Of a stretch of DNA of 64,000 nucleotides, positions 4,898-31,900 are shown in pieces. The DNA lies in assembly GCA_047495785.1 (NCBI GenBank), contig JBLDXI010000033.1:2728001-2792000 (forward strand), in the 5' to 3' direction. A model generated the notes under the pieces. It searched no databases. It saw nothing but the letters and a program-made list of their open reading frames with translations, and had not been told where the DNA came from. Within the stretch, counting starts at the first letter, position 1. The number at the start of each line of letters is the position of its first letter. A program made the position numbers and the translations under genes. The stretch comes from Lepidodermella squamata. Lineage: Eukaryota; Animalia; Gastrotricha.

Positions 4898-4902
4898 GTT
4901 AC

Positions 4903-5366: not shown

Positions 5367-5424
5367 TTGTTTTTTCACTCGCCCCTTTTCACACTTCGAG
5401 CTCTCAACAATGGGATTTATGCTC

Positions 5425-5448
5425 AATAAATAAATAAATAAATAAATA
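5425..5448 (+). repeat. (TAAA)n tract, resembling a retroelement 3' tail
   Basis: aataaataaataaataaataaata directly after the myosin fragment and ~60 bp of unrelated sequence. Confidence 0.6.
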
Positions 5449-7087: not shown

Positions 7088-7201
7088 TGCGACTGGACGA
7101 ACAATCAATAAGCAAACAGCTGTAAAGTATATTAAAAATAACAACATTAACAAAGTATAATAAGAACGCGGGTTGCAAAGACTACAACTCAGATGTTAAA
7201 A

Positions 7202-7270
7202 ATTAGGTTGAAGAGTAGGTTCAGGATTAGATTTAGGGTTAAGGGTTAAGGGCTCTAGTAGATTTTAGGG
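7202..7270 (+). repeat. Degenerate TTAGGG-like tract
   Basis: ttaggttg...gtaggttcaggattagatttagggttaagggttaaggg...ttttaggg. Confidence 0.45.
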
Positions 7271-8047: not shown

Positions 8048-9188
8048 ATGACATCTAGTTCACCTGAAAACAGCTTAGAGACGGAAAATCTGAGCTCAAG
8101 GTAGGAGTGAAGCAATATCTAATATTGTTTTTTGACTGATATAATTTTAGGCGGTGAAATTTGTTGTGGTCCGTGCCTTGTTTAACTTTTTCAACAATGT
8201 ATAAGGAATAGCGAAAAGAAGCCGAAAAAGGAGAAGCTTCGTCTCAGGTCGCTACCGTTCAACCACTGCCTCAGAAATCGTCATTCGATGGCAGACCATT
8301 TAGCCACCATGACGACAGTTTAATCAGCTTCCCGGAACCTCAACCTGGCGAGGAAGATTTGATTCTCGCAGCTGATTCTCGGTGCGAATGTGGCTGATGT
8401 TTTCGACCCACTGGCGTTTTCTGACAATTCGGTCTCCGATCTGTTGGTTGACGCCCCACCCTCTATCCCTTTGTGTAACGAACCTGCAGGTCCTCAATCT
8501 GGGCACCAAAACGCAGCCGCACGAGTGCCATCTTTTGACTATCGAACATCCAGCCTCGACCCATCGTCAGCAATCGACTCGGCGATTCGGCGGTTCTACG
8601 CAACTACTGACCGCAAACATGACAGGCGTGATTTCATCCGACTCTTACGGCATTTGTCGCTGTTGTGTAAAAAGTCGGACGTTGTCGGACGGGTGTACTG
8701 CTCGGCGTCTCGTTGGATTAACATGGCTCAACTTGGTCCTAACGAAGCGCTACCTTTGGACGGAGACCCGCTTGAAATCTACTCGAAATACCTCGCTGAA
8801 ACGCCGCTGTTCATCAGCCCGTCCGCGTCATCGCCCCACGCTGTCGAAATGGAGAACATCATTCGAAATGTCGTACAATCTACCCGGTATCTCATGCTGA
8901 TGAACACCGTAATTCGATGTCCAATTGACCTCATTCATCCCTAAGCCCAGTCGATTTCGAGAAAATCGTGGGGTCGCGTCATCTCATGATGGCGGACGAC
9001 ATGTCATTACGGTTTTACGCATCTGGAACATGGCACCGGCGTATTACCCGATCTGCCAAAATGCAATGGTGGCATCGCCCTTTGTCGTTCTGTTCCTCAA
9101 TCTACGAGAAGGAGTAGGTGTCGAGGAGAACCATGCGCCAGATCAAAATGCTAAAAGTCATGGTTCTGAAGGTAATTTTGATATTTAA
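8048..9188 (+). pseudogene. Orphan, probably disrupted gene (main ORF 8390-8944, continuing in another frame to ~9170)
   Basis: Splice-like sites (donors 7916, 8101, 9172; acceptors ~7973, 8150) and coding-like composition, but stops and frame changes; no recognisable motif. Confidence 0.35.
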
Positions 9189-9319
9189 TTTATTCCGGTT
9201 ATGAATTCTTTGGTGTTTTGAGGAAAAATTTACACTTAAAAAATTTGCTTAGCAGTAGTTGTAATTCAGATCAGCTCCGTTCTATAAAGATGTTGATACA
9301 TCGAGTCATTCTCCAAAAT

Positions 9320-11675
9320 CTTCGCGATAAACGCTAGAATAGTGGATATATGTGATATGAACTTGGTGATGCAGTTAGTCAGTGAGCTGGAATTACCGGA
9401 TCTGGCGATTCAATTGGCGATAAGATTGGAAAAAGAGCCAGTGGTTCCGCAAAGCCGATAACATCATCTCGAACAAAAACGAAGGTGAGGGTTTCTACAC
9501 AGATCACTGGTTTATCGACCTGTTGCATTCACTCTGATGATCACGAGTCGATCGGATCCATGTATGCTGTTAGTCCGGGCGACGATGGTAACGGAAGAGT
9601 AACGGAAGAAAAAGCCGAGTTTACGCCGACTGACATTAGCAGAAATCACGAAATCATGCGTTCATTTTTCATAAAGAGCAAAGCCAGATGTTTGCGTGCA
9701 GCTTTATTCCTTGGATAATTCCAATTTGCAACAATTTCACGCCGATATCTGCGACGGCAAATTTGAGGTCGTTAGCTTTTCGAAAAGTAACAACAAGGAA
9801 AAGAAGCCAGTCAAAGCTATGATGCTGTGATATTCGCATATTTTCGAAAGTATGCGAAGTGACGAAACAAAGCTTCCAGTTTCAACGTGTAGTGTAGTGG
9901 GAAATGCAGCGGAACACTTAATGCCAGTTTGCCGCTTTTCCGGTGAATCGCCGTCGCGTTTGCTTGTCTTGTTATCGGCCTATTGCCTATTGCCTATCGT
10001 TGGAAAGTTGAACAGTAACACTGACGATTTGTTATGCGAGTCGTTGAAGTCTATGTAGATTATCAGATGAGCAATGAGTCAATGAGATGAGAACAGTAAG
10101 CCTAACAATGCTAAAACATACAGCATGCGGGGGCTAACTGTACTTTGCTGCTGACTAAGGCGTGGCAGGGTGAGCACGGTTCCTCTCGGTTTAACATCGT
10201 CGTCAACCAGGATATATTGAATTCTTAACATAGTATTCCCGACGATTTTCCAAAGCTAAAGCCGATCGAAATGTTGCAGAAGCGTTAGGTAGATGGCCGT
10301 ATTGTCCGTTCCGTTAGTTTAGCTAAATAGAAATATGGGAATTACCGCTTACGAATTACGCCGACAGATTTTGCCAAATTGAACGATTTTGTTGATAAAC
10401 TTCAGGCCAGTGGTGAAGCTTTTTGTCAAAAGTGACTTGTCGTATCACGCAACGTAGATGTTCATTAATGCTGCGATGCCTTCGTGTTAGAGTGAGCTAG
10501 AATTAGAATTGTTTACGGCTGTCGGAATTTTTGACTCAACTTCATTTCCATGGTTACTACATCTTTGCCGTCTTCGACTCGACATCGACAGTTCTGTCAC
10601 ATTTGAATTCTATGTTGTCACAATTGAAAACAGGCAGTTAGAATTGGTAGAGGTTGAGAAGTTTACAGATGACGAAGTAAAAGATAGGCCCGCTGTCGTG
10701 CTGGCACAACATCAAGATGACGTCATGACCATGGGTTCGGTCCTGATATTTTTCCAATCAAAAGAAGAAGCTCAGGCGTGGCAGTGTGAGCACTGTACGG
10801 TTCCTACGGTGAATCACCTTCGAGGCTATTGGTATTGTTATTTGCATATTGCTATGCATTCGGCAGCAATGATTATGACCTCGCTGAAAAAGTAGGTTAC
10901 TGCGGCATTTATGGCCTTTTATTAACAGATGGTTCAGATGGTGTATACACCGGAGAATCACACGGATGGGTCGACGTTGTTCCAGTCGATGTGGGTTTCA
11001 TCAGCGTTAAATAGATGGCCGTATTGTTCGTTCTGTTACTATAGCGATAATCAAACATCATCTGAAGACCATCAGCCAGTGCGTTCAAATGAGCAAACTA
11101 AGGAATCTAAGTTGGGGCTGAGCCAAGAATTTACCAGCTGGAATAATTTTACTGGAAAAAGGGCCAGTGGTTTCGCAAAGTCGACAACGTCACCTCGTAC
11201 AACGAAGCTTTGTCCATATATCCTAATTCTGATAATCACGAGTAGCTTGAAAAAGTGCCACCTCGCATGCGACTATTTAGTAAGTCATATGAAGCTGGGA
11301 TTATCGATTCGTCAAAATTTGCTAATTAGTAATAATTTCCGGGTGATTGAGCAACTGCAGAGCTCGCTGCGCCTTTTATGTAGCGACCCTGTCTTCGAGG
11401 CTATTGGTATGGTGGAGTTGCCATATTTGCAAGCAAATCGCGCGTAAATTTTTCATAAAGAAGAAAGCCAAGTGAATGCAGTCACTTCAAGTGAATGAAT
11501 GACTCATTATGACCTCGTTGGAAAAGTCGTCCGTTATACAGATTATCGAGTTGCCATATTTCGAGTCAAACTATTATCGAAAGTATGCGAAGAGACGTAA
11601 CAAAGCTCGATGCCTTCTGGTTTCAACGTGTAAAAGAGTGTTGCTTCAGCAACAAACAAGAAATCACGAAATGCC
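9320..11675 (+). repeat. Scrambled mosaic array of ~25 short diverged fragments homologous to the 13798-18991 gene
   Basis: E.g. 9412-9526~17199-17309; 9683-9818~17842-17977; 9907-9987~18270-18350; 10643-10803~16949-17108; 10807-10893~18304-18390; 11084-11143~14734-14793; 11251-11322~17987-18058; 11332-11393~14949-15008. All on the same strand and non-collinear. Confidence 0.92.
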
Positions 11676-12586
11676 AGCTAATTAGAGTGAAAGTAACCAT
11701 TATTAAGTCGGAAATGAGTGTGAAGTTTGTGTGGTCGTGTGTATCCATATAAAATTTTTTGTCGATTTCATGTATGTTTTGCAAAATTAATAGTTTTATT
11801 AATTTTTTTCGTAGGTTGTCATAACTCGCTCTTAACGATTTCGAAAGCCAGGGCTACGCAGACCGAACGTCGCTTGAAGCGCTGAAGTAACCTTCTCAAT
11901 GTTTTGAGCAACGTCAGCAACAGCTTTGATGCGAATGATAACATCGAGTCCAATGCGGCTACTGCCATTTTCATCGAATCTGTGACACCATATATCATCA
12001 ACGTGAGGTTGCAATGTTGATGTCAATCGTTTGCAAGTGCTGAAATATTGTCAGGTTAATTTTTACTTTTTGATGCATTTATGATCTCGTCTGAAGCTGA
12101 GATGTCGCTGATCAAATCCAATTACGTTAGCAAAGCCTGTTGATTGGAAAAATTGTTATGATGCCTATTCATGTCGTCAATTTTTTACAAATATTTGTTA
12201 TCTGCTGAACTAACTGAACTTTTGTTGGGTATACTAATGCTGAAACAGACCGAATTGACGTGACATTTTGCTACCAATTTTTACTTCGAGCAAACTTACG
12301 TTCTGAGCTCAAACTTTGAGATTGTGTTCGTAAATAAATGGATTAATAAATTTCAACGTTATTCCCTGGCTATTGATTGATGTTGAAATATTGAATAAAC
12401 GTTGCACAGTAAAAAGAGTGAAGTGCTTTTGTACTTGATGTATAATAAAGAATAAAAACTATTGTTGCAAACTTTGACGATTTATTTTTGAAATATTTGG
12501 AGCTGGCCTATCAAGGCATTTTCATTGGAGCTGAAATTTTGTTGGAAATACGGCATCGGAAAACGGCATATGATAGACCGACACTA

Positions 12587-13030
12587 CAGGGTGTTTCATA
12601 AAAAACCGAACTCCTATAAAAATGTACTGCTGCTGCGCGTTATCGATTTTTTTCGCAAACAGCACGGTCACCGCAAATTTTACGCATCAGCAAATAAACT
12701 GCCATTTTTATTTAACTGATGGCCCCTTTCAAACGCAGCGCGACGAAGTCAGAAACCTCACCGTTCACAGGCACGTTCTAGGGAAACCCGAGCGCGCAGT
12801 GTCAAAGCGCCGTTATCCAACCGCACACAGGCCGGCTAAAATTGACAGAAATTGACCGCAGGTTAACCGTGAATTCACCGTAGAAATGCCGTATTCCTGC
12901 CGCTTTTTCTCCTCGCGACAGCAACAAATAACATGGCGCATGGAAAATCGATAACGGCAGTACTTTTCCTATAATATTTATGCATGCTGATATAAGCCTT
13001 ATCTCGTACCGTTTTTTATGAAACACCCTG
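12587..13030. mobile_element. Tc1/mariner-type MITE (444 bp), TA target duplication
   Basis: TA|CAGGGTGTTTCATAAAAAA ... TTTTTTATGAAACACCCTG|TA terminal inverted repeats; no transposase. Confidence 0.88.
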
Positions 13031-13451
13031 TACGCGAACAATGTTTACTGTAATATCCGACACGGTACGGATTCCACACGGGTTTGATATACGTGAAGAG
13101 TCAATAACAGTCAGGCGGAAATGATAAAAATAACTCCTCATTTTATTGCTATAACATTTCGGTATTTTTAATGCGACACGCAGGCCGCTTATAAGTTGGT
13201 ATGCGCACATTCCCCAGGTGAAAGCGAGATAACGAGCAGAGAAAGCGCATGAAAAACATTTGACAAGTATTAAGATCACTGATGAATGAATTTCGAGATT
13301 TACCCACCCGTCGTGAAATTGCTGTCACGGGTTGGCTCATGAGCAATCTGGCGGTTAGCATCAGGCAACGGCGAAGCTGCTGCGCTGCGCAGTCGACGCC
13401 AGCGCCGATTCGTCGTTCAGCGCATTGCGGCGCAGTAGTATTGGCAGCGCG

Positions 13452-13703
13452 TTAAGCCGACGAACTAGCAGACTGCTGCGCTTGAACTGAGGGCACGGGC
13501 GAGCGGGAAACGAGCTCGAACGTCGTTGAAAGCTTACCGTGCAAGCCGTATTTCTCGCTGTGTATCTTCTCGAATAGCTCCGCGATGTGATGCGTCGACC
13601 CGGCTAAATGCGAATGAATCAAATTTAAATCAGAAAAAATAAAAGTGCACTTACTCATTTCTAGAAGGCTCATTCTGTTTTAAAGATTCCTGTCGATGGC
13701 AGC
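13452..13703 (-). other. Possible short spliced transcript divergent from the nuclease-like gene
   Basis: Minus-strand GTAAG donors (13654, 13537) and acceptors (13703, 13604, ~13487) spaced as ~50-nt introns; reading frame ambiguous. Confidence 0.3.
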
Positions 13704-13797
13704 TGAAATAATACAATCGTGATGTTATAACTTGCATTTCCTCTTATTATTAGTTGCTTATATATCCCTAAATATCGCAATATTTTCGTGTCGAAGA

Positions 13798-14872
13798 ATG
13801 GCGGATCCTGCTCATGTGATACCAGAGCTTAAAGTTTTCACGAAGAAAGTGTTCATCGTATGCTGGAGGGAAAATTCGCGTAAGGTCGGAGGCCACAATG
13901 TTTGCAATGTGACACTATCAGTACACTCGGATTCATCGAAGCGTTGCGCAGGGCAACTGTGGTCAACTAAAAAATCTCAATTGGATAAGGTTCAGTTCCT
14001 AGGCGTGATCAAGACAGAAGAGTTTCAAACTCCTCAGTGCATGCAAACAATCACGGATTTCTTACCCAAAACTGACCTTTACGTTGGTGGGAAGCTGTTC
14101 GGGATAAAGATCGAACTGGATTCAGCCCATGTTCACAATTTCACCATCAAGGACGATGTACGGCTCGAGAAGCTATTCCCATATCGGCATAGCATGCAGT
14201 TCGCAAATGTTTGTGATCTCTACAAAGCTCCGAAGCCTGTGAGAAACATCAATGTTGCTGCCTTGATTTTGAATGTTGGCGAATGTAAACCAGCGGTGAT
14301 ACCGGACAGGAAGCATGCAGAGATGTTATGCGAATTCGAATTTGTCGATTTAATTTGCGGCCAGACCTTCTGTAAATCAAACGAGACCGTGTTTTTATGG
14401 ATTGCTTTATAAATTTTCTATAATTATAGGGGGTAAAGCTTGGGGCAAGGAATGGCAACTGTTTTTGAGCGAATACAAAGGAAAACCTGTTATTCTGGAT
14501 AGCGCAAATTTTGCTGTCTACACTAATGGCTACGGCTGCAGTGTCGCAACAGACAAATTAACAACGTTCGATGTTGGGCCAACAGCCCAGCAGTTCCTTC
14601 CCGCTATCCCTGTTATTGCACCTTCCGTTGAAGACGGCATTTCGCCGAAGCGGGCCAGATACGCCAGTGGGCCATGCGCTCGAACTGCGTCTGAGAGCAG
14701 AGTTATCGACCAACAAGACCAACAGCAAACTAATTCAAATCAGCAAACTAAAGAATCCAAGTCTGGGCCGAGCCAGGAATTTGCCAGCTGGAAAGACGTT
14801 TTACAGGCGGCTGCCATGTTTCAATGGCCAGTCGATGAAACTGTTGAAGCAATTTTTGCAGATGATTCCTAA
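13798..14872 (+). CDS. OB-fold ssDNA-binding protein (RPA70/MEIOB-like); either a separate gene or the N-terminus of the downstream nuclease gene (1-nt frameshift near 14867)
   Basis: Exons 13798-14371 + 14430 onward give INVAALILNVGECKPAVIPDRKHAEMLCEFEFVDLICGQTFWGKAWGKEW...KGKPVILDSANF...TDKLTTFDVGP, resembling the MEIOB/RPA70 OB pattern (INV.A.V..VGE.K....DR....CE..L.D.....W). Confidence 0.6.
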
Positions 14873-14939
14873 ACATTCTAAAACTCGTTAATGTTTTTTT
14901 TTATTGTTGCTGTTGCAATAAATTTTAAATTATTTATAG

Positions 14940-17900
14940 ATGAATCCTAATTACCCTTTAATTGAGCAACTGCAGAGCTCGCTGCGCCTTTTATGTGGCG
15001 ACCCTGTCCCTTGGGACGAGCTGGAAAAAGCCTATCGGAGTTTAAGCGTACCACCGGAACGGGGAGCCCATGGGTTTGTTGCCGTTGATTATATTTTTTA
15101 CCGAATAAAAAAATTACCGTGTTATAGCAAGGTTGAGGCAGTACTATCACGCGTTGGTGTGACGTTGGACGTATTGGAAATCGGTGCATCACTCCGAAAT
15201 GGCATTAAATTCCTGTTTGCCACGCTCGGCAACCTGTTTGCTGTAGCTTTCGTTGGAACCGACGGGCAGTTGGTTCAAGTCCACTGCTTTGTGAACGCAG
15301 AAGCCGCGCCCATGCTGCCGAACTTGACGCTTAGCGAGATGTTGGCCATTTGGCACAGAGCCCGGTTTTATGTCTATCAGGTTCTACAATAATATTCATG
15401 ACAATAAGCAATATTCTAAAAGCTAACCTTTCCAGATGACAATCGATGACATCCTGGTGAGTAAAACTGCCGCCGAACTGACAGTCGCTCATTTAGCCGT
15501 GGCGTCAGATTTGGAACAAACGTTCAAACTGCTCTATCGTTTCGGCGAAAGGCTCAGGTTTCACGCGATTCCTGCACTACAACGGCGTCCTGAAATGACC
15601 GAAGTGGCTGCAAGGATTCTTTGGCATCTCGGTTATCGTGAAAATGCACTTCGAACGGCCTTGGCCAATCCGAACACGCCTAAACTAGTCACGTTTGTAA
15701 GTTGAACACTTTTCCAAGTTCCGAACGAATTCCAAGTTTGATGTAACATTTTCAGCTCAAGCATCCATCAGCTCGTCCTCATTTGTTGGCATTGTGTCGT
15801 GATGACGAAACGTGCCGCCTTAAAGCCTTCCAGCTTGACCTCATCCAAGTTGAAGATGTCGCTGATCCAACACCTCAGATCGCGAATTCGGCCAACGCAG
15901 ACGACCCGCCACGCTTGGAGTCACCTGAAGTGGCTACGTCAAACGCGTCAAACGTGCCTCTTACGATCCCGCCCAGTTCGATCATTCGATCAGACGAACC
16001 GCCACGCTTGGAGTCACCTGGAGTGGCCACGTCAAACGCGTCAAACGTGCCTCTTACGATCCCGCCCAGTTCGATCATTCGTCAGGTATATTTATAATAA
16101 ATTTATCTATATTCAAAATTACAAAAACAATCTTTATCAACAGACCGCAACGCCTCGGCCCTTAACTGGTTCGATTTCACGTGAAAACGTTACCTTCACT
16201 CAAGTGGTTATGAAAACCAAACCAACTTCGAACGCTGTAAGTGAGGAGGCCGCGCTGCCTCGTGAGCCAGAGAATGTGCCATCTACTTCAAATGGAATAG
16301 ACCAGCCGGCGAATCGAAAGGTTTGCAACAACAACAACACAACTTTTTGCATTGTTAACAATATTGAATTCTTAACAGAGTATTCTCGACGATTTCCCTA
16401 TGCTGAAGCCCATCGAAATGCTGAAGGCGACGAAAACACTGCTCAGCTCAATCAACAAAGAACATGTCGAGAAAGTTGACTTCGCCAAAATGTATTTGAA
16501 CGCACGTGAAGATTTTGGCACAGCGGTTGACAATTCAATTCATGCTTCAAAGCTCCGGAAATGTTCATTCCCCAGTAAGGCCATGATCGACAAGCCGATC
16601 AACATGATTTTGGCTTATCATGAGGAGCTGGGATCAATGTATGCCGTTGGACCAGGGACGGATGGAAACTGCGCTAGGCTGCTGAATGGTCCCAGCAACA
16701 TTCCAGCTAGACAGTTCGAAAATTCGCTGAATTTGGCTGAATTTTTAACGTCACTTCACTTCGATGGTTACTACATCATTGCCGTCTTTGACTCAACATC
16801 TCCATCGACCTTTACAATCGAAAATCGTCGAAGTGTGGAAACCTTTGGTCAGCTGAAAAACTGTCCTAATGGTTACTACAAAGATATTCGCAGAATTGCC
16901 GAAAAGCATCGTTCTCGGATAGTGAGTTTCGAATTCAGTTACGATGACTTGGAGGAGGTGGAGAAACTTGTTGATGGCCAACTAAAAGATAGGCCCGTCG
17001 TCGTTCTGGCGCAACATCAAGATGACGTGATGACCACGGGTCTGGTCCTAATTTTTTTTCAAAATGGCGAGGGAGCCCAGGCGTGGCAGTGTAGGCACTC
17101 TACAGTTCGTCTCGGATCAAAATCGTCGCCAACTAGATTGTTTTCGCCAGCAGAAGCAGGCAAGGTCAAGCCTAAGTGGTCTATAATTAAGCGCCTCGAT
17201 TGGCGTTACGATTGGAACAAGGGCCGGTGGTTTCGCAAAGCCGACAACATCACTTCGTACAACGAAGCTGACGGTTTTTACACCGATCATTGGTTCGTTG
17301 ACTTGTTACCCTCGTTCCGTGATGGCCGCTTAACATCAACTGATGCTGCCAAGTACAACGATTTCGTTGACAAATCGTTGATACTCCAGTACATTTCGAA
17401 GAATACCAAATCCGAATACATCCGCGATTGGATTTTCACCTGTACTCGCCGCAGGCCAATGCTGAAACTTTTCGGTAAAAGCGACATATCGTTCCATGCC
17501 ACCTTAACGTTCGTTGACGCTAATGAGAAGTCGAAGGCCCTTACTGCCGTGACTGAATCCGGCGACTCAATCCGGGCCGCGTTCGGGAAAAACGCTAAAA
17601 TTCTCGACATGAAAGACATGAATTCGGCTATGCAGTTAGCCAGCGAAAAGTCGCCAGATCCTGGCTTACTACTGCTTGACCTGCCTAGACACATCACTCG
17701 CGAGGAGCTCATCAGCTACCTACCAAACGGCTTCGATGTACACTTGGTGGAATTGCCTTGTTTCCAAGCAAATCACGCGTACATTTTTCACAAGGAACAA
17801 ATCCAAGTGAATGCGGTCATGGAAAAGCTGTCAAATGAGTGGCCAGATGTTCGCATTCAGCTTTATTCGTTAGACAATTCGAAATTGCGGCAATTTCAAG

Positions 17901-18991
17901 CTGACATCCGCGATGGCAATTTTGAGGCTGTTAGCTTTTCGAGAGGTAGCAATAAAGAAAAGAAAACAGTCAACGCCAAAGCGCCAAAATTGCCACCTCG
18001 AGTACGACTTTTCAGTAAGTCATATGAAGCTGGTATTATCGATTCGTCAAAATTTGCCTCTTCATTGCACGATCCTCTTACTGCGTACGCAGTTGTCGAA
18101 AGTTTGCGTGGTGCCGAAACAGAGCTCGCTGCCTTCTGGTTTCAACGGGTGGTAGAGTGCTACTTCAGTGGCATGTGGGATGCATGCACCTATTCGTTCC
18201 TGAGGCATCAATACGGCGATGCTTTCGTGGAAGGTGTTACAGCCGCGAGGTTCAAGCTATTGAGATATACAGCGGAACACTTGATGCCATGTTGCCGAAT
18301 TTCCGGTGAATCACCTTCGAGGCTCTTGGTATTGCTATCCTCATATTGCCATGCATTCTGCAGCACTGATTATGTCCTCGCTGAAAAAGTCGACCGTTAC
18401 ACTGACGACCTCTTTTCAGGTCGCATGACGCCTGAAGTGAGATATGGTAAGAAATGGTCTCCGCTCTTCCAAGGCGTCGAGTCCAGATTCGTCTTAAGCG
18501 GTCTTCATCCCTGCCAATGTTGCAGAAATTACTGCTGTGAAACTAACCACTGCTCCACTCTGGTTTTTCTATCGGAGGTTACCAAAGGACAGCCAGTAGG
18601 CTACAGCGGCACCTATGGTCTGTTAATAACAGATGGTTCAGGTGGTGTTTATACAGGAAAATCCGCTGTGACCTTGAGGCGTGCCAGCAGCCACAAATCG
18701 CATTCGCTCCAGACAATGTCGAATCCAATAGCGGCAAGTAGATGGCCTTATTGCGCGTTCCGCTACTACAGCGATAACGCATGGGCAAGAATGCCTTTCC
18801 GCCTCTTGTTCGAAAAGGCGATGTGTATGAACGTCGCCGGTGATCGAGAGCGATTTCTACGAGAAACTTTTTTCAATGCTACCAACAAGCCTCACCCAGA
18901 CTACCTCGCGATCCACAATATCGATCCGAACGCGGTTGTTAACGAGGACGACGAGTTTCAAGACGACGGTGATGAAGAGGAGTACATGTAG
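14940..18991 (+). CDS. Large orphan protein (1273 aa from 14940) with three RRM-like modules, a Cys cluster and a C-terminal GIY-YIG-like endonuclease; exons 14940-15380, 15436-15696, 15756-16085, 16144-16320, 16379-18991
   Basis: Phase-0 GT-AG introns keep the frame open. GIY-YIG-like SGTYGLLITDGSGGVYTGKSAVTLRRASSH...LFEKAM...FFN (~18605-18880); RRM-like LLLLDLPRHITREELISYLP...HAYIFH, SLILQYISKNTKSEYIRDWI...HATLTFVDANEKSKAL, GLVLIFFQNGEGAQAW; CQCCRNYCCETNHC; acidic tail. Confidence 0.75.
15898..16081 (+). repeat. Two near-identical 93-bp (31 aa) tandem coding repeats
   Basis: cagacga.ccgccacgcttggagtcacctg...cccagttcgatcattcg starts at both 15898 and 15991. Confidence 0.92.
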
Positions 18992-20215
18992 CCATCGGTT
19001 CAACATACGACGTCTTGTGTGTGACGTTTATCGCCCAGTTTGTTTCACTAAGACTGTAAAGTAATACATTTGATTCATTTGATGAGTGCTATATTCAATA
19101 GCTAAGACTGTAAAAGTTGCAATGAAATAAAGATAATTGGTTTATAACCTACTGCTGATGTTGTACTGCAGTGACGTGAACGAAGCATCGGTAAACATTT
19201 TCGATCGACCAAGTTCGAGCGTTTTAAACTGACAAAAATACACAAAATAGGAATATTGCGATATATCATGCGAACAAATTCGAACCTGAAATCACCAGCA
19301 GCAGCAGCAGCAATTATTAATGGTTGCCAGTAGTATAATGAAACGTGTCGCGATGGTTTGTTCAAATTCGAAGGCAATGATATACATCAATAGGGCCGCA
19401 TTAATTAAGAACATTAACAGGCCATCATCATCGTCATCATGCCAGTAACTACTTTCAATAACAGCCTATAGAAATAGGTTCATTTCATGAGACGTACAAT
19501 AGGACAATATGGACTCATTCTGCGAGCCGCGGCTGACTATCGTACGTCTAAGGATGGTTGGTTCTGCCATTTCTAGCAGACGTAAAAAAGTTCATCAGTT
19601 GAGTTGAGTTTAACTGACGTGAATTGGCTTTTATTAGCTATCACAGCCTTCACTTCCACCGGTCGATTTCATTCAGCTTCAGCTTGATTTGCATAATTGC
19701 CTCGTTTGCGTCATTTCTTGCGCTAGTTTTCCCCCGGGGCGGCCTAAAACCTGACGAAAAATCGATCGAAATTGGCGCAAAAATCAATGACAAGAAATCG
19801 GGGTTACACTGTATCAGTGCTCCGATTTTTTTTCGTGACTCGAAAGTGTCTGCCACTGGAAAGAAATTGCAAAAAAGTGTACGCCAATTTGGAAATTTCT
19901 TAAAAAGCTTGATTTTTCGGCGATTCGCCTCTGAAAATGCGAAAAATGAGCATCTCGAAGCTGGTTTTGTCTCCAAATAGGAAGGAATTGTGGGTCTCCT
20001 TCTAACTTCCTTCCGGACAGATTACGGATTCCAGATCATTGAACATTGAAAATGGGGCCTAATGAGGATGGGTTTAGGAGAATAGGAATAAAAGGAAAAT
20101 GGATAATCGCGAGCGAAGAGAGCAACATTTTCTGAGCGTGGTCCAGTGGGCAAAAATCGGAACACTGCACTGTATTAAAGTACAGGGTGTTCAAGAAATA
20201 ATGGCTAGATATATA

Positions 20216-20636
20216 TATATGTCGTATCGTATAAGGCAATCCCTCCAATGGCCGATAGAGATATCTCAATGAGCAATCGGAAATTTACTTTCTGACTGAT
20301 GTTTTCATCAGCCTTCAGGTTATTGAATTATGATCTATCACATATTAAAGAGCCCGAATAGCCCTATCGATCAGACTTTTAATTGATTAATAAAGAGTTT
20401 AAATTGATCCAGAAGGCCAGAAGACAGTTACAGTGAAAATGCGCTAGCTTTTTAGAAACACATAAAACTCATAGATGGGGAACAAGTTATTAGGGATTCT
20501 GTAATCTTGCTTGGTTTCCAAATAAAATAAAATGATTAAAATAACTGAAAATGACATTGGGAACAATTCGGATTGCTCATAGATGGATATCTCAATCGGC
20601 TAATGGAAGAAAATGCCTTATACGATACGACATATA
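20216..20636. mobile_element. MITE with ~70-bp imperfect terminal inverted repeats
   Basis: tatatgtcgtatcgtataaggca...atgagcaatc mirrored by gattgctcat...tgccttatacgatacgacatata. Confidence 0.8.
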
Positions 20637-20849
20637 GCATTGAACTTTGAACGAGTGACATCTTTTGTACTGGACACGCATTTTCTTGCTCGTCTTACTG
20701 AACTTACTGAACATCAATTTTTCAGGTTCGAAGGTTCGAAATACTTTATCCCTAAAAATGACTGAATATTGGCGCGAAACTATTGAAGAAAGACGTCCAG
20801 TTCCTTTCTAAATTTGAAAATTCATATTGAAATTAAGCATCGCACGCTT

Positions 20850-21707
20850 TTCTAGCTAGCCAGTAATCCTTATGAGCCCGGCCATTTTACCGGCCTTATA
20901 TACCGGCCGGCTTGTAGTAGTATGATGTATGCCATAACAAGCGAGGCGAAGCCGAGCTATCTATCAGCTTGCTTATTATAAATTAGCTTGCTTTTTGCTT
21001 GCTTCTACTAATACTACTCCTACCAGTTTTGTAATATATATGCTTGCTAATAATGCAACTTGCTTAACCGAGAGATTTGCAATTGCTTGCTATAAATTGA
21101 ATATAAATCGCCTAAATTTAGTATCCCTAGATAATAATCAGCTTGCTTCTTACAAACTTGCTATTGTCTATTGTCTTGCTCTATCTACTTATCTAATATC
21201 AAGTTGCTAATTATCAAATAGCTTGCTATCTGCTTGCTCTTATCACAATACTTATTATCATGTATATCATCTTGCTATCTCTTGCTATCTCTATCTCGCT
21301 AATAACTAACTTGCTATCTAAGTATTGACTTACTATACACTATAGATTACTCATATTTCGCTTGTTATCATCTAGTATATATAAACTAGAATCATCGCTT
21401 GCTATAAATTACACAGATACCGCTAGCCATGTTTGTAACTTGCTATGGTAGCTTGCTTTTAACTTGCACGTTCTTTAGCTCTTCTCGATCGCGCTTGCTA
21501 GCGATATATTCGGTTGTCAGCGACGCTTGCTTCAAAAATCTGCATCGTCTTTTTTTTACATTTTGTTTTAAAATTAAATAATAAAGTGTTTTTAAATTAC
21601 GGAAAATATTTTTCTTATTTTATTGACGAAACTGTTATAGGTGCTCTATGAGAACCCCGGAAACCGGCGGCTTGCTTAGCAGCGGCTTGCTAGACTTCGA
21701 GCTTGCT
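20850..21707 (+). repeat. Dispersed same-strand CTTGCT motif array (~20 copies) at the right end of the insertion
   Basis: gcttgct/cttgcta recurring every ~20-60 bp between 20967 and 21707; also gcgaggcgaagccgagc at 20941. Confidence 0.65.
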
Positions 21708-21754
21708 TATCGCACCAATGCCAGTCAGCTGGTGTATTATGATTATGTATTATT

Positions 21755-22554
21755 ATGTATTATGCTTCTTTAGTAATGGTAGATTCCGGAATGGATTCTG
21801 ATACAGCGGAACTCGCAAACTTCGGCCTCAGCCTCCTTAACATTGCTGCAACTGGCTTGTCATCAGCAATTGTAGATAGGGCAGGAAGGCGCATATTGAT
21901 GCTAGCAGGCGTAATGGGCCTAGGCATTTCACTTGTCGGGCTGATGATAGTGCTCAGTTTCGACGTAAGCACGAAAATGAATCCATCTCTAGCACAAACT
22001 TATTGTTTTCTGATTTTGAAGGCCATCTATGGAGTCATAGCCGTTTTCGCCGTATTCCTTTTCTTTTTCTCAATCGGCCCAGGTAACACAATTATCTCGG
22101 GGAAGTAACGGTTTACATCGTTCCGTTTACATCATTAGGACCTGTACCATACATTATGACAGCTGAGCTGTTCCCACCGAGCGCTCGGCCGATGGCGATG
22201 AGCCTTTGTATCCTAATTAATTGGTTAACCAATCTGGCGGTGAGCATGCTATTTCCTATCGTAAAGGTGTGTTTATCCTTTGATTTTTTCGCGATAATAT
22301 TTAATCAAGAGTTTATCAAGGGCTGCATCGGCATTTATGCTTTCGTGCCATTCATAATTATGTGCGCTATTGAGTTTGCGATCATGTTCCTCTTTTTACC
22401 GGAGACCAACAACGTGCCAACTTCAGAGATCAGCGAAATGTTTGCGCCTGGAAAATCACTGTTTCATTTTCGGGGAAAAGCCGCACAGGCTTTCCAATAT
22501 GCCGAGCATAAGGACCCTAAGACGAAATCTGACGCTGACAACAATTATTTATAA
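21755..22554 (+). pseudogene. GLUT transporter copy 2, 3' half (rest of TM7 to TM12 and C-tail)
   Basis: MYYASLVMVDSGMDSDTAELANFG, DRAGRR, GPGPVPYIMTAELFP, LPETNN; introns at ~21965, 22083 and 22267; frame intact. Confidence 0.88.
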
Positions 22555-22957: not shown

Positions 22958-25900
22958 TTAGGAAATGTTGGCGTTGACGCCATTTTTCTTCAAAGCTTCG
23001 CGGAGTTGCTCCTTCACAGCGTCAGCATTGTCCTTTGGCAGCGGCGGCGCCGTAAGCTGCGTCGAACCTTTCTTCGCACTGCCCGCATCCGAGATGTTAC
23101 TCTTAGGCGCAGCAGTATCGGCACTCAGCCCTGTTCCTTCGTAGATTAGCTTGTACTTGAGCGCACTCTCAGGTTTTCCAGGGTCACTAAAAATGTCAAG
23201 TTCACCTCATGATTATCAATATGGATTTCTAACCTTTCCCAATAGAACAGATACTCCGTTGCACCAAAACGGCCCTCTTTGACAGCAGCTCGCCTGATAA
23301 CGGCTGTATTCGCGTCTTTGTCGACCAAAATAGATCGCATATTGCCGAGCGAGACTGCCTGTAGCACGAACTCGTAGCCATCTTTAGGTAGCTTCTTTGC
23401 AGCTACTTTGCGCGCGCCCGATTCACTTCGGCTGCCCTCGATCGTCATTCGTAAACCGATCGGCCGAGCAACAGTATCATCCTCGGGGCCGTACAACTTG
23501 ACGTAGTAATCGATGACTGATAGCAAACATTTAGAAGTTATTATTTAATTAATTTTGTGAAAAACACTTACATTGAGTGGTGGGATGTTTAAACCGGACA
23601 ATCGGGTGCTCGCAGCAGCCGTCATTTGGTTTGCCGCACAGGTGCGCAAAGTTGAAGTGAAGCTGTTCCCCGCTCTCCCGATCGGTGGCATATACATCTT
23701 TTATACACCATGTAGCAGAAGAGGCATCTTCGACGCGAAGTTTCAAAAGATCCTTCAATTTCGCCTCCTCTAGCGTGAACACCTGTCCCTGGGTCGTTAC
23801 CGTTTCGGCCGGATTCAAAGTCAGCGTCTCCTTGGCTTGAATGCTGGCGCTAGATCCGCTAAACAGAATTATGGTCACAGGCCGCGAGGGGCCAGGTTCA
23901 GCAGTTGTGATGATTCGACAGTCGAAATTGCCACTGAAATGTTCCGGCGGATTGTCAAGCACTCGTGGTTGGTCCCAAACAGGCGTAAAATCAACATAGA
24001 TTTTACGATCGCCGGTTCCGCTGTCCAACCAACGGAACGCAGGGAACACTAGTACCGGCTTAGAGATGTCCCCAGCATCGCGAACTTGACATTCGTTGAT
24101 AAACCAGCCGAGACCACGACCAGTCGATAGATGGCCCAAACCGATAGTTTTGACAGTACCCACTGAAACAATAAAAACATCGCAGATATCGCGTGCTCCG
24201 CGCTGAAACATTTTCGGCCTGTCGCTTTTAAGAAGGAACACTTTTCCGGAATCTCCCCACGTGCCCTGGATATTCGCGTAAACAGCTGAATCTGGATCTG
24301 CGCGTTCTTTGTCACCAGTGAATATGCACACCTCGTAACCAACCTCAGCAATCGGAGCCAGATCAGGTCTTATGACACCGAAATCTGTACTGCCAGCGCC
24401 ACCCGTCGCGGCACTAGCCTCAAGAGCACGTATCGGCGCAGCGAGCAGCTCTTGCTTTGTCTTCGTGTCAGAAAGGTTAACCTGATCTATTTTCCAAGAA
24501 AAAGCTCCTTCACTCTGCACAGCGACTCGAAGTTTAACTATCGGACCAATAGCTCCGAAAGACGTCTGGAAAGGTTGCGGCTTCGCCAGGTTACCGGCTA
24601 GTTTCAGCAAATCAACCGGGTCTGATTGCTTGCCGCTTGCTGAGTAAGCGGTAAGTGTCAGCGCTGTAGCTTTTCCCGATGGCGCATTATTCACCGTTAG
24701 CTGTACTTTGTAGGAGCCTGATGATGGCTGCGGTCCTGGCTGGAAGCGCCTGTCGTATTGAAGCGCAACGCCTGTCATTTCCGTTTCCGGATGCTTGAAT
24801 TTCGTCACTTGCCCACTCTGCACGAATTGCACATCAGAGAATACTGCCTCGAAAACATCGTGCTCTGTCCTGCGAATTCGAATCCGCTTCACTTGCCAGT
24901 TGCCACTGGAATGCGCTGACTCGGCGAAACTGAGGTGCGCTTCTTTGATATCGCCAAGGTCAACAGCAGGCATGAAAAAAATGTCCGTAGTACCCGGCTT
25001 GCCAAACACCTGGCCGCCACCAGTCTGCGAACGCGAACGGAGCAAGTAACGTTCGCCTGTGTCGCCCTCAGAACCAACAATCATGCATTTGACACTGCCG
25101 TTTTTCAAGCCACCGCTCGCTTTAGAAGCGCCTCCTGTTTCGATAATCAATATGTAGGGCAAAGTCACTGGCGTGTTCGGTGGGGCATTCGATTTTGCCG
25201 CAACAGATTTGTTGCTTGCACCAGAGGTGGGCGCAGGAGGCGGCTGAACAACGGCCAATTCGCGACACAGACTGCCATCTTCGGCTTCGGGACCGAGCCA
25301 CCGGTCCAGGTAAAATAAATATTGGAAAGCTGTTGCTCCTGAAGCGTCCGTCAATTTTACCTATATGAAGACATTTATAGATACATGCAAAAGTCTAACT
25401 AATGAAATCCTCACCCAATCGAGATTGAGCGGGTCGGCTTCCCCTTCCGGCGAGTACGTGTCAATAGAAATTTTGCGCAGCTGACCGATGTCTCCAGAGT
25501 TGTATTCGAATTCAGCCACAGCGTTTGCAGCAAAATTCTCTCCAGCTCTGACACCATTAGAGAGCTTGGCTCGTTTCGATTTACCGCGGCTGCCGTACAT
25601 TGTCATGTATACCTCGGTGTTGTAGCCGGGTAGGGTGTCTGGACCTGACTTCGTTTTCACCTTCCATTTTTGCGGAATTTTGGGAGCCTTCGGGTCAAGT
25701 TTGGTCAGCTGATCAGCGGCAGGTATTGTATCGACGAAACGCAGAGTCCGTTCAATCTAGTAAAATCACAAAAAACTAAAGACTTTTCCCATTCGAATAA
25801 TCTCCTTCCTTACATGCCCATCATCTTCCCAAGGGTCCAGCCATCGACCGCAAGGGAATATTAGTGAATTATCAGGATCGGTCGATGCTGTAACTCTGAT

Positions 25901-28900
25901 GATATCGACAAAAGTTCCTCCACCGTGACCCTTAGTATCACAGCCAATCGTCAGCTGCTTCAACCCCTTCAGATCAATAGCCTCGACCGGGAATGGCAGC
26001 ATTTTGCCTCGAGTGCATACAGCTTTCTTCTTCGCAGCTGTATAGAACAGATAGCGTTTGCCAGTATCACCTTGTTCGCCGGTGATACGCACCCATAGCG
26101 GGGATTCGCTTTCTGCGAACCAGTGATCGCCAATAACGACGCCGACGTAGTAGATAACCGTGCGTTGCTCCGGTTTCTTGCCCTTCACCGAAAGCGCAGC
26201 CTCGCGATCTAGGTGACTGTCTGGGGCTTTTTCAATTGATAACCACTTGTCGAACGTGAATAGCATTTCCTCTTTCGTCGCAGTATCAACCAGCTTCACC
26301 CAATCCACGTGCCAGTCGAATGGTTCGAACTTATTAGCGTGGCCGAGTCGAACCTTGTAGATTTTGCCGAGTCCCAGAGCTTTCACTGGAGCTTCATCCT
26401 CTTGATCAGGTTGCCAGGGCGTCGTACTTTTCGGTGTCAGTTCGTTGTCGTTTGTGTGATTTTGATCGCCATAAATCGCTAGTGTTATCTTCTTGCCAGC
26501 CGGAGCTTTCCCGGAATCCTTGGCTGTTTTTATAATGACCTTATATTCACCCTCTGTTATGAAAAAACAAACGGCTGAATAAAGACTATTTTTTAGTGAA
26601 AACGATTACGTACTAGACTCGCCGGGTGGCTCGCCAGGATACAAAAATCGCTCCGTTTTGCCGTCGTCTTGGGCTGTGTCGAACCATTTTGAGCACGGGA
26701 AGTACCACTGTTTTTCCTCTCCCTTAATTTTTGTGGTCACAATGACTCTTTCAATATACCATCCTGCACCCTCAGCAATGTCGCCATGGCCTATGAAAAC
26801 CTTTTGAAGTTCATCTAAATCGACGGCCTGAAAAAATGAAATGTTATAGCTATTGGGCCCATGGTTTTTATATGGTCTCGGCTCACCTCAACGTGAAAGA
26901 TGTCGATTTGGTTGGAACGGAATTTCGTCTTATTATTCCGAGACCAGTATAGGATTCGCTTGCCAGTGTCACCTCGTTTGCCAAACAACTGAATAAAACA
27001 GCGGGCATCCGTTTCAGCCCCCGGCAGCTTGCCCGTAAGTATTGAAACTTCGTAGATGAGAATGGGCAAGTTCGCAGATGGCGATGGCAACTCGCGCCAA
27101 ACATCTTTGTCTTCATGCACTCGGGTAAGCCAGCGACCGCATTTATACAGCGTAAGATCGCCAGTCTTGTTGTCCTTGATGCGAACTTTTTCGACATACC
27201 AAGTTGAAGTTTCATTGTCATCCTCTTCATGCCCGAAACGGATCTTGTACATCTTCCCTGGATTTTCCCCGTTCAACTTCACTTGGAAAGTGTCAACTTT
27301 GCCTGGTTTGAAGAGCGATGTATCTTTCTTGCGATTCAGGACCAGTGGGCCAACGATGTTCTTATCGCCATAGGCCCATAGTTCGATGCGATTCGTCTGA
27401 TTGCCACACGCAGGCTCCGCATTGCCAGTCGTTATCTCAACTTCCCAGTCACCCGGCTCTTTGGGTTCCTCTTTTTTCTCTTCTTCCTTCTTCTCTTCTT
27501 TTGGCGGCGGTGCCTTGTCAACTTTAAGCACCTAGGAAATCAAACGAATATAAATTAACCATGAAAGTTCGTGGAAAAAAGCTCAATTACCCTTTCGATT
27601 TTGCCATCATCTTGACTGCGATCGAACCAACGTTTGCATGGAAAGAACCATTTACGCTGCGTGGGTTTTTCAAGCCTTACGACGACGTAGTCTACGAACC
27701 AACCAGCGCCTCGGTCCTCAGACTTGTGGCCAAGCAGGACTTCAGTCAGCTCATCCAAGTCGACAGCTTCAACCTGGAACTGATCGACCTGGCCTAACTG
27801 AAACATCGTTTTGTTGTTGAGGGACTTGTACAGTCGTCTAATGCCGGTATCCCCACGCCGACCGCGTATCTCGATGTAGGGCTCTGCCTCAGTATCAGCA
27901 CCTGGCTCTTTGCCAGTGGCTACTTCGACTTTGTAAATGAAAATTTCGAGAGGCGTCTTTCCCGGTCGAACTACCGGCAACTCGCGCCAGACATCCAGAT
28001 CTTCGTGGGTACGAGACATCCAACGGGCGCAGGGAAATTGAAAGACGGCGTTGTTGAAGAGATCTTTCATTTTGACGCGCTCGCAAAACCAAGGATCTGG
28101 GGTATTTTCGACTCGACCAATTCTTATCTTATACAACTCGCCGACTTTGTAATCGATGAAAATCTGCACGCAAATGGGCAATGTAACGGCGAATTTCACA
28201 TTTAATTAATGAAACAAACCTTGAATTCGTCCGTCTGGCTGAGTTTGAAATGTCCCGATCTGCCTGACCCTAAAATAATAGGGCCAGCCTTGCCTCGATC
28301 GCCGTAGCCATAGGCCCACAGCACTACAGTATCCTGCGTTTCCATGTTGCCTTCGCTACCAGTTGTCGTCCATATATTCCAATCACCCTCTAATTACATA
28401 CATGAAATAAAAAAATAGATTAGCAAAGGTCAGGTTGCCAATAAACTTGGCCTGTGTAATAAAAAAATGTCATAATATTTAGGCGAAATACTCGGATAAA
28501 TGAAAACGAATTTTGCATTTAAAATAAATTATCCGAAGCTAAAAGCTAAAAAATAGTCGTGAAACCAAAATCGGTAGTTTCACCATCATTCGGAACCAAA
28601 GCTCAACTCAACGTGAGAAATAAAATTATCAGGTTAGCTAAACCTTTTCCGGCTGGTTCGTCTACAAAGCGGGTGATGATGCGCATAGGATTTTAGTTCA
28701 TAATCGTTCATAATCGACGGTATTTGAAAACACACCCTTTGCCGGTGGTGGACCAGGTCTTAGAATTCGTTCGATCAAACCATCGTCCTCGTACTTGTCA
28801 AACCACCTATATTTTGTCACATTTAAAAAGTGCGAACGAATGGAAAGCGACGAAAATCTTACTTATTGCAAGGAAAGTACCACGCCATGCTTGATGCTTT

Positions 28901-31900
28901 TGTTTGCTCGGAGGACAAGAACACGGCGATACGCTCAAGGAACCAGCCGCCACCTCGCTCTGTGTTGTTGTGCCCGACAAGCAGCTCTTGTAGCTCATCA
29001 AGATCGACAGCTTTAAGACGAATAATGCATCAGTTCTGCAAGTTTGTTACGTCTCTCCTTACCTTCAATTTCAAACTCGTCCAGTTGGCCATTGCGAAAC
29101 TTTTTGGTAGTCCCATTCAGCTTTTTCCACAACACTCTAGGGCCTGAATCCCCACGGCGGCCTCGGATCTCAACGTAGATACGCGCGTCCGTTTCAGCGC
29201 CTGGCTTCTTCCCGGTATAAACCTCCAACTTGTAGCGATAAACTAAATTTGATCAGTTATGAAAGGATTCACTAAAATGGGACTTGAAAATTCCACCTGG
29301 TAACGGAGTTTGTCCTGGCCAAACAGCTGGCAACTTTAAATTTAACAGCCAAGTTGAGATAGATTGTTACTAATGAAACGCAATTGTCTAACCTCCCGCC
29401 AAACGTCCTCGTCGTCACGCTTCCTTGACATCCATCGGCTGAAAAATGTTGACAATGAGTGCAATCACCTCTGCAGAAAACCATGTAACCTACTGGCAAT
29501 CGAAATTGAGCACATATTTTCCTGTCCTGTTTTTCGCCTTAACCTGGGTAACACGACAAGCATAGAATTAATCAGATTCATATTAATTTTCATCTGCTCA
29601 CGTTTTCCAAAAACCAGCCCTCATCAGTGTCTTCACGGCGACCTATTCGAATTTTATAAAGCTTGCCCAACATAGGCGAAGGCCAGTTAACCAGGAACTC
29701 GTCGGTTTGTCCTAAATCGCAAAACTTTTTAAAAGGTCCATTCCATCTCATGATTAAATTGCCAACCAGGTTTGAAATATTTATTCGAATTAGCAGGAGC
29801 CAATGTTACAGGTCCAACTCGGCCCTGAACGCCGTACGCCCACAGCACAACAGTATCCGTAGTAGCCATCGCCTGTTCCGGTCCCGTAAGAGTTATGATG
29901 TCCCATTCTCCATCTAGTTAAAGTATAGTTGTAGATAAGCAACAGTGATACAGTAAAAATACCTTTGCTAGATTTTGCTGTTTTGAGTGCGTGAAAGCAA
30001 AGTCATGATCATAGATATTGCCGAGGCAAGAGGAACTTACGCCTTAGACCTGGTCTTAGCACCCGCTCGATTTCCTGATCACCTTCGGCTTTGTCGAACC
30101 ACCTTAATTAAAAATGATGATGGCCATCTTCGTATAATATCGTAAAAAATACTTGTCGCAAGGAAAGAACCATTCCTGTTTAACCGGGTATTCACAGCGA
30201 ACTGTGACTGATTCGATAAAGAAACCCATTCCCGGATTTTCGTTGTGGTGACCAATCAGTATTTCTTTCAACTATTTAAAAATCAATAGATATCGACAAC
30301 GGAGCTTGCAGAAAATGAAAACCAACATCATCGAGGTCGACAGCTTCAACCAGGAAAGTATCCTTCTGACCAGCCAAGAATTTAGTTTTATTATTGAGCG
30401 AGAAAAACAGTTGTCGATGGCCAGTGTCTCCACGGCTACCGCGCAATTCGATATGAACCTTTGTTTCAGGTTTAATCGGGCGCTGGCTGCCAAGTTTCAC
30501 GTCGACGAAGTATTTGCAAACTGAATAATCGCCAAAATTGGCATGCCTCTATAACTAGCTCAATGACATTACTTTCTAGAGGATCCGTGCTTGGCCGGAT
30601 AGCCGGGCTTTCGCGAACGACATCGAAATCTTCCTGCGTTCGCGACATCCAACGCCGGTACCAGAACGTTAGACTTTCCTCTGTTTCCAAGTTCTTCATT
30701 ATGACCTTTTCGACGTACCACTCATCGCCAGCAACGTTGTCCAGGTGCCCAATTCGAATCTTGTATATCGATCCGATTGAGGTGTTTATCACGACCTTGA
30801 AATTGTCTGTAGTGTTGACTCTGAAGTTGCCGGCATTTCCACTGCCCAAGGCTAAAGGTCCGACTTTTGAGACTCGTCCGGTGCCGTACACCCACAATTC
30901 GGCTTTTCCTTTAAGGCTAGCCTGTCCTGTTGTTACCCAAACATTCCACTCCCCAGCTGAAAATTTACAGTAGAATTTAGAATGTAAGGAATTGAAGTCG
31001 AAGGCTAGCAACTCACGCTGTGGGAGGGCAGGTGGCGGCTCAGCTGGCTTTGGCGGCGGTGGTGCCGGAGCAGGCGCGGGTGCAGGCGCCGGCTGCTGCG
31101 GAGGATATGGATAAGGCAAGTCTTGGGAGAAGTTGAGTTAATTAATTTTATCCCATTTAGGATAATGAATCGACATTACAAGGAAAAGCTGGAGCAGGAG
31201 GCTGAGCAAAAATTATGATGGGCTGACCAGGCTGTTGTTGGTACATAGGTTGTTGAGGTGGAAGGTAGGGTTGTTCTGGAATGAGATACAGATTAAAATT
31301 GATGTTCATATACCTAAGTGAGATTGCTCGATTGATCACAAAACTTCTAATGTCTATAACACGAACAGAAAACGTAAGCTATTGAAACTATAATCGCGGG
31401 GTTATCCGGAAACGCTGGAATGCAGGGATTCAATAAACAACCTCGGACTCGTTGCGGCTCGTCTGGTGAACAAGCGTTTCCGTAAAATCAAGTAACAACC
31501 ACGACAATAATAAAACAAATTATCCGAAACTACGCTGCTATCAAACTAATGCATGCTTTAAACTATATGTATCGCTAAGAAAAATCATGATTAAATTGAA
31601 ATTAAAATTAAAATTAAATCTGATCTAAAAGGTCAGCATCGAATTTCTCAAGCGCAAACGACCTCTGATAAAGTGGATACGCTGTGGTTCGTCTGTTCGG
31701 CCGTCAAAGTATCAAGCAGTTTAAAAGCCCAATTTAAATTAAGTTCCTATTGCTATATCAAATAGATGCTATCTACTTCTATATTCTATACTATTCTATA
31801 CTAACTATATTAACGGATCTACGATTCAAATCAATAAATATTAGCGCTATATGTTCATTTGTAAAAAAATTAAAGTATGTTATCTAACGTACTTCTCGGC

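Follow-up and report, generated by a model that had tools for sequence, protein, structure and literature searches.

A 27-nt inverted piece, probably from a second GLUT-family gene, at the right junction of a 16.86-kb insert that splits a tandem GLUT copy

Introduction

In flank transduction, as described for L1 3' transduction and Helitron read-through, the flank of a previous site is carried along at one end of the element. Recurrent insertion at one conserved position of a gene family is characteristic of R2 and R1 in 28S rDNA, Pokey, and Dada, and some R2 RNAs carry target-derived sequence. Group I and group II intron guides and the target sequences at the R2 5' end act at bases just upstream of the insertion, and comparable element-internal complementarity is described for the IS110 bridge RNA and IS200/605. 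To our knowledge, neither mobile-intron guides nor RNA-guided transposon recombinase systems operate in animal nuclear genomes. Small flipped fragments also occur at complex rearrangement junctions. At yeast breaks, templated inverted duplications of 5-34 bp are formed, with one end synthesised and the other captured by end joining, and distant templated inserts are seen as well (Yu et al., 2024, PMC11724301).

Here, we describe a locus in a 64,000-nucleotide stretch of Lepidodermella squamata DNA (hereafter the window, to which all coordinates refer). The window is metazoan in content, with ADAM, PLAT/LH2-repeat, bZIP, and NGP1 GTPase genes and introns of 54-58 nt.

Results

A GLUT gene split at a conserved codon boundary

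Two tandem GLUT genes on the + strand and one large insert define the locus:

1069 to 2807, + strand: GLUT copy 1, the tandem paralogue without interruption (extending at least to the end coordinate given)
3750 to 22554, + strand: GLUT (Sugar_tr) copy 2, broken once by the insert, with all recognised exons open on both sides
4898 to 21754, no strand assigned: insert of 16,857 bp splitting exon 3 of GLUT copy 2

Within exon 3 of copy 2, the insert separates an Ile codon from a Met codon. When aligned to the Pfam Sugar_tr profile, the 5' part of copy 2 extends to position 273 and the 3' part begins at position 274, and the two halves abut exactly at 273|274 around the 16,857-bp insert. The break falls inside the conserved QQLxG...YY stretch of Sugar_tr, a motif across which copy 1 is uninterrupted. 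An intron was considered as an explanation of the insert and rejected, as no in-frame GT..AG pair removes it.

The tandem paralogues also differ in intron content: copy 2 has a 54-nt phase-1 GT..AG intron after GPG (22085-22138) that copy 1 does not have. Directly downstream of the GLUT pair, on the - strand, is a run of PLAT/LH2-domain exons with a doublecortin domain in a LOXHD1-like architecture (23549-35681).

Two 27-nt arms with silent differences

The 5' half of copy 2 ends in a nine-codon sequence that recurs, inverted, near the right end of the insert:

4871 to 4897, + strand: left arm, the nine codons (HQLTGIGAI) with which the 5' half of GLUT copy 2 stops at the insertion boundary
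21708 to 21734, - strand: inverted 27-nt piece, probably from a different GLUT-family gene, encoding the same nine residues with five silent differences

Each arm, read on its own strand, translates as HQLTGIGAI, and 22 of the 27 bases are identical. All five differences are silent and lie at the third positions of codons 1, 5, 7, 8, and 9, such that five of the nine third positions differ and none of the 18 first and second positions. The preliminary description had reported precisely this relationship, and the sequence, a repeat search, and a pattern scan all confirm it. The repeat search recovered the pair independently as an inverted match, and the back-translation pattern of HQLTGIGAI was met without mismatch at the two 27-mers only, with copy 1 at three mismatches and no matches in shuffled sequences. 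When the window was scanned on both strands with the left-flank 27-mer, the sole other site with five or fewer mismatches was 21708-21734 on the - strand. The expected number of such matches is 1.5e-4 per window, falling to 1.2e-7 when the right junction and the 100 nt around it are considered alone, and the probability that five random substitutions would all be synonymous is 4.4e-4. The match is real and statistically solid. By tblastn, no other GLUT-like sequence was found inside the insert, and the similarity of the 27-mer does not extend past the nine codons.

As to where the 27-mer came from, copy 1 was ruled out, in agreement with the preliminary description: it reads QQLTGLGAV at the motif and differs at 9 of 27 bases, three of them changing amino acids. 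A neutrally drifted copy of copy 2's own flank was likewise ruled out by the silent-only pattern (p = 4e-4). Because all five differences are silent, the 27-mer appears to come from a separate GLUT-family gene under purifying selection. Third-position divergence between copy 1 and copy 2 is saturated at 60-65%, and the five of nine third-position differences in the 27-mer agree with this value. The proposal that another GLUT-family gene was the source is thus borne out by the silent-only differences together with a third-position divergence like that between paralogues, and the 27-mer most probably derives from a separate, selected member of the family that is neither copy 1 nor copy 2. Within the motif, the protein sequence of this donor homologue is closer to copy 2 than that of copy 1 is. 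Judging from these codons, a second family member appears to have taken part in the event by which the insert split copy 2. As the copy 2 exons are still open, the insertion would be recent relative to the age of the donor homologue.

The donor gene does not lie within the window by tblastn or by the both-strand scan. Database searches with spliced genes were run exon by exon. The exact 27-mer had no match in metagenomes, an exact-protein look-up was empty, and neither word search nor metagenomes returned relatives of the GLUT exons, the species seemingly being absent from those collections. We also considered whether the two 27-mers might be terminal inverted repeats (TIRs) of the insert itself. 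This was rejected: the left arm is the gene's own in-frame motif, and TIRs would not differ at third positions only.

A right junction in three layers

At the right junction a CTTGCT array comes first, the 27-mer second, and 20 nt that copy the flank in stutters third. The two layers on either side of the 27-mer are:

20968 to 21707, + strand: CTTGCT array, 22 exact motifs plus near variants, on one strand and irregularly spaced
21735 to 21754, no strand assigned: AT-rich junction filler, 20 nt, made of stutter copies of the right flank's first bases

The CTTGCT motifs occur in an AT-rich background with spacings of 4-145 nt; 15 of the 22 read GCTTGCT, and there are about seven one-off variants. 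The last unit adjoins the 27-mer, and comparable clustering occurs nowhere else in the window. The array may be a set of binding sites or a decayed minisatellite. In repeating a short motif on one side only, close to an end, it is reminiscent of the subterminal binding-site arrays of transposons.

The filler holds a 12-mer identical to the uninterrupted copy-2 junction, from which the copy 1 version of the junction differs, and Tandem Repeats Finder (TRF) reported period-10 rows at 21733-21764. The insert and the left flank end in the same four nucleotides (TATT), possibly through duplication of 4 nt or as microhomology.

Together with the 27-mer, the left flank makes up a quasi-palindrome that has the break at its centre and encloses the insert. 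The similarity of the 27-mer to the left flank stops where the CTTGCT array starts. At this boundary end the final base is mismatched and four of the last seven bases match, the last two codons still reading Ala-Ile. ATC follows four of the CTTGCT units in the array, so that up to about 4 nt of the 27-mer end could be array or microhomology. In view of the end mismatches and the array ATC, the 27-mer end is placed at the breakpoint only to within about 0-4 nt. The preliminary description had the piece ending at the breakpoint codon; its end is indeed at or near the boundary, but it is fixed only within this range.

Contents of the insert

The ends of the insert read GTTAC... and ...TATT, and its target is T|A. 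At the left end there is a remnant of a gene:

4900 to 5365, + strand: myosin-tail-like pseudogene fragment (Pfam Myosin_tail_1, E=7e-8, below the gathering score)

This fragment begins within 6 nt of the left junction and has one frameshift in a three-frame reading, the Pfam match being the sole basis for its likeness to a myosin rod. It is followed by an AATAAA-rich tract that includes (AATA)6 at 5425-5448. A telomere-like short run, (AGGGTTA) x2.6, occurs at 7235-7252. Two MITE-like units are also present. In the first (12585-13032), 394 nt separate two 27-nt inverted repeats of 93% complementarity, and a related terminus occurs alone at 20180-20213; in the second (20216-20636), the 34-nt arms are separated by 353 nt, and TA repeats flank the unit.

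No repeats common to the two ends of the insert were found. Profile searches of the insert ORFs found no reverse transcriptase (RT), transposase, integrase, or Rep. Rfam likewise gave no match in the insert, to a ribozyme or to any other family, at the gathering score or at E<=1. A second copy of the insert unit was not retrieved when relatives were sought in collections that included IMG/VR and metagenomes, and only one locus is at hand. We found no feature in support of a retroelement, a Penelope-like element, a Helitron, or a TIR transposon. Overall, the insert lacks the appearance of a defined mobile element, and the analysis did not bear out the discrete element envisaged in the preliminary description: terminal repeats, RT, transposase, integrase, and Rfam families are all lacking, and the left end is a fragment of a myosin-tail pseudogene.

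An orphan gene family

Between the myosin fragment and the CTTGCT array lie the copies of an orphan gene family:

13732 to 18991, + strand: orphan multi-exon gene with 54-58-nt GT..AG introns, the last exon being an 863-aa ORF
9410 to 11649, + strand: mosaic of about 15 short pieces of the orphan gene, 57-167 nt each and 76-91% identical

The mosaic lies upstream of the orphan gene and represents a diverged, fragmentary copy. Some of its pieces have changed order, several internal stretches are deleted, there is at least one frameshift, and several pieces are joined with only 0-3 nt between them. Differences among the family copies are distributed over the three codon positions as 37:22:62, and this third-position excess indicates that the family is or was protein-coding. 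One exon of the orphan gene contains two copies of a 93-bp unit at 96% identity (15898-16085, + strand), duplicating a Pro/Ser-rich peptide.

The 863-aa ORF (16400-18991, + strand) carries a GIY...YxG-like motif near its C-terminus, in the form GTY, 11 aa, YTG, followed by RR and H, and a degenerate family copy reads GIY..YTG; this is a motif-level reading only. Pfam assigned the ORF to no family, neither as a whole at E<=0.1 nor in three pieces at E<=10. An exhaustive search among 1.84e9 proteins returned no relative, and no PHROG, PDB relative, word-search match, or IMG/VR relative was found. Single-sequence AlphaFold2 models reached a mean pLDDT of only 34.4 over the whole ORF, or 33.5 when the C-terminal 164 aa were modelled alone, too poor for a fold search. 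The protein had been described as a GIY-YIG protein. Profile tests failed to bear this out and left a short GIY...YxG-like motif in two family copies, so that membership of the 863-aa protein in the GIY-YIG family is doubtful at best.

Discussion

A proposed relic of an older junction

We tentatively favour, at rather less than an even chance, the explanation that an earlier junction, formed in another homologue at this very codon boundary, left the 27-mer as its relic, and that the relic was carried with the insert. The insert, or its CTTGCT-ended right part, would formerly have adjoined the 5' half of another GLUT-family gene that had already been broken at the same boundary (profile 273|274), with this donor 5' half oriented oppositely relative to the CTTGCT array. 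Copying or moving into copy 2 would have brought along 27 bp of the old flank. The last join, to the right half of copy 2, would then have been made by error-prone end joining, giving the 20 nt of stutter copies of the flank. We infer that the boundary between the array and the 27-mer is the older junction and that the break hit two members of the family at one and the same position, which would imply that breakage at the motif is recurrent. A nuclease encoded by the insert is a possible breaking agent.

Several observations are consistent with a relic. The 22/27 match sits at the mirror position of the insertion, where its expectation near the junction is 1e-7, and its differences are silent only (p=4e-4) and affect five of nine third positions, as between old paralogues. 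An older junction accounts at once for the boundary, for codons that are foreign to copy 2, and for the fact that the piece touches the array directly. The halves of copy 2 fit exactly at Sugar_tr 273|274 with their exons still open, and the orphan gene is multi-copy, with coding-type divergence and deleted or scrambled copies, as is often the case in selfish elements. The one-sided CTTGCT array at the end also has a likeness to the subterminal arrays of transposons. On the other hand, neither termini nor a known mobility enzyme, ribozyme, or poly(A) tail could be recognised in the insert; on the left it ends in a fragment of a host myosin-like pseudogene rather than in an element end; and the orphan gene has ordinary spliceosomal introns, as host genes do. 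Only one locus is at hand, with no second copy, donor locus, or paralogue with the 27-mer codon version retrieved, and the piece can be delimited only to within about 4 nt at its end.

A more specific form of mobility would be an uncharacterised animal nuclear element that has a highly divergent GIY-YIG-like nuclease in the intron-bearing orphan gene and the CTTGCT array at its end, breaks GLUT-family genes at one conserved codon boundary, inserts in either orientation by end joining, and carries scraps of previous targets. We regard such a motif-targeting element, driven by a GIY-YIG enzyme, as unlikely. If it existed, it would be a homing-like parasite of a protein-coding motif.

Possible break repair with a paralogous patch

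The 27-mer might instead be a repair patch, formed at a double-strand break in copy 2 by low-processivity, template-switching synthesis of the alternative end-joining (alt-EJ) or MMBIR type, an explanation that we consider the main rival, though rather unlikely. The order of synthesis and capture would be a flank stutter of 20 nt, 27 nt from a paralogue engaged by homology, and 16.8 kb of ordinary genomic DNA, copied or captured, with no mobile element and no targeting, and the patch would stop where homology with the broken end stops. The insert does look like ordinary genome, containing the 3' end of a gene, an intron-bearing gene, pseudogene debris, and MITEs between arbitrary ends. The layered right junction, with its stutter and possible 3-4-nt microhomologies at both joins, fits such repair. 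Short patches of flank and homologue with possible microhomology are what alt-EJ or MMBIR would leave, and 27 nt is within the 5-34-bp range. In addition, the arms form a quasi-palindrome centred on the break, which is the geometry of the yeast templated inverted duplications (PMC11724301). However, the documented fold-back copies are exact and come from the same molecule, whereas this piece would have to be templated by a diverged paralogue. Nor does one fold-back event place 16.8 kb in the middle of a quasi-palindrome, and we found no simple path by which the copying of an intact paralogue would stop at the boundary.

Less likely origins: a hybrid gene, gene conversion, or a guide

A third paralogue offers another way to place the piece. 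The right half (21755-22554) and the 27-mer would together represent one third paralogue whose last 27 bp before the break were flipped in place in a complex rearrangement, the left half would belong to another paralogue, and the "gene" would combine two tandem copies, having both lost and gained material between them. This would explain why the piece lies beside the right half, in a region where GLUT copies are in tandem, and small flipped fragments are known at complex junctions. It nevertheless still requires that two paralogues were broken at the same boundary. Moreover, GC3 and divergence from copy 1 fail to separate the two halves (0.48 vs 0.49, Fisher p=1), and the stutter holds the last codon of the left flank in its copy-2 form. 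A hybrid of this kind is, in our view, improbable.

Gene conversion appears more doubtful still. The 27-mer would have started as an exact fold-back copy of the copy 2 flank, and the left half would later have been overwritten by gene conversion from a functional paralogue, giving rise to the silent differences. One break then suffices and the coincidence of boundaries is automatic (PMC11724301), and the left-half exons are still open. Against this, the conversion tract must reach to the very edge of homology, the donor must have an identical nine-residue motif while the neutral 27-mer stays unchanged, and the insert at the centre of the palindrome requires a second event.

We consider it very improbable that the 27-mer is a working guide, that is, a target-complementary RNA or DNA at the end of an element that directs its integration. 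The two arms can pair, with a duplex energy of -35 kcal/mol vs -13 +/- 3 for shuffles, and the complementarity covers the bases immediately upstream of the insertion point. The mismatches, however, track codon phase rather than pairing, with one G.U wobble against four true mismatches, which disfavours the guide sequence suggested in the preliminary description. There is also no conserved RNA structure or known family, and the piece lies 16.8 kb from the flank to be paired. Homing-like integration, suggested in the same context, finds no support either: homology-driven homing leaves the donor flank direct, and here it is inverted.

Finally, although inverted matches 21-37 nt long with 74-81% identity do arise by chance within 24 kb, a chance match is ruled out by the scan expectation (1e-7 at the right junction) alongside the silent-only pattern (p=4e-4), and a fold-back read artefact would be expected to yield an exact copy, which the 27-mers are not, so that chance or an assembly artefact is scarcely credible as an origin.

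Implications

If two members of a transporter family did break at the same codon boundary, a conserved coding motif would be repeatedly cut or broken, which would be unusual for an animal nuclear genome. Recurrent breakage would also give a handle on an orphan multi-copy gene family for which a search of 1.84 billion proteins returned no relative. Should the 27-mer be a repair patch instead, the locus would be a clean natural break-repair junction that sampled a diverged paralogue, useful for understanding the origin of complex insertions yet no new system.

Comparison with known systems

The 863-aa ORF has in common with GIY-YIG homing endonucleases and Penelope-like elements a GIY..(10-11 aa)..YxG-like pattern followed by R and H. 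It differs from them in that there is no profile match, RT, hammerhead ribozyme, or terminal repeats, the ORF is an exon of an intron-bearing gene, and the flank is inverted, whereas homing leaves it direct. As with homing elements, the insertion is at a conserved motif of a host gene (Sugar_tr 273|274), but a host preserved by splicing and a direct, co-converted flank were not found, there being no in-frame GT..AG pair and an inverted flank. For Penelope-like elements in particular, neither an RVT family, nor a hammerhead ribozyme, nor repeats common to the ends were found.

Nor do other classes of mobile DNA match. A TIR transposon would have TIRs of its own, a target-site duplication, and a transposase, whereas the sole inverted pair at the ends is the flank and the 27-mer, the 4-nt TATT repeat is ambiguous, and no transposase was found. 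A Helitron would have a Rep/Hel domain, a 5' TC end, a 3' hairpin-CTRR end, and an A/T target, whereas no such domain was found here, the ends are GTTAC.../...TATT, and the target is T|A. Non-LTR 3' transduction agrees in the geometry, with the carried flank on the 3' side; RT and a tail are absent, and the ORF is in an intron-bearing gene.

The guides of mobile introns (IGS, EBS/IBS), the IS110 bridge RNA, and IS200/605 share with this locus an element-internal complementarity just upstream of the insertion point. In contrast to these guides, the complementarity here spans 27 nt with codon-phased mismatches, at the far end of 16.8 kb, and no structured RNA was detected.

If the 27-mer is a relic of an older junction, the locus would resemble R2/R1 in 28S rDNA, Pokey, and Dada in recurrent insertion at one conserved position of a gene family. 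Unlike those elements, the target here would be a protein-coding motif, the evidence comes from one locus without a recognised enzyme family, and the orientation is reversed between the inferred donor and this copy. The locus is also like flank transduction by L1 or Helitrons in that the flank of a previous site would be carried at one end. Here, however, RT, Rep/Hel, poly(A), TC/CTRR ends, and defined termini are all missing, and the flank would have been picked up from a gene homologous to the new target and broken at the identical codon boundary.

With yeast templated duplications and alt-EJ/MMBIR products, the locus shares the size class, the inverted geometry centred on the break, a join with stutter or microhomology, and the possible capture of large foreign DNA; it differs from them in that the template would be a diverged paralogue and a 16.8-kb segment lies between the arms.
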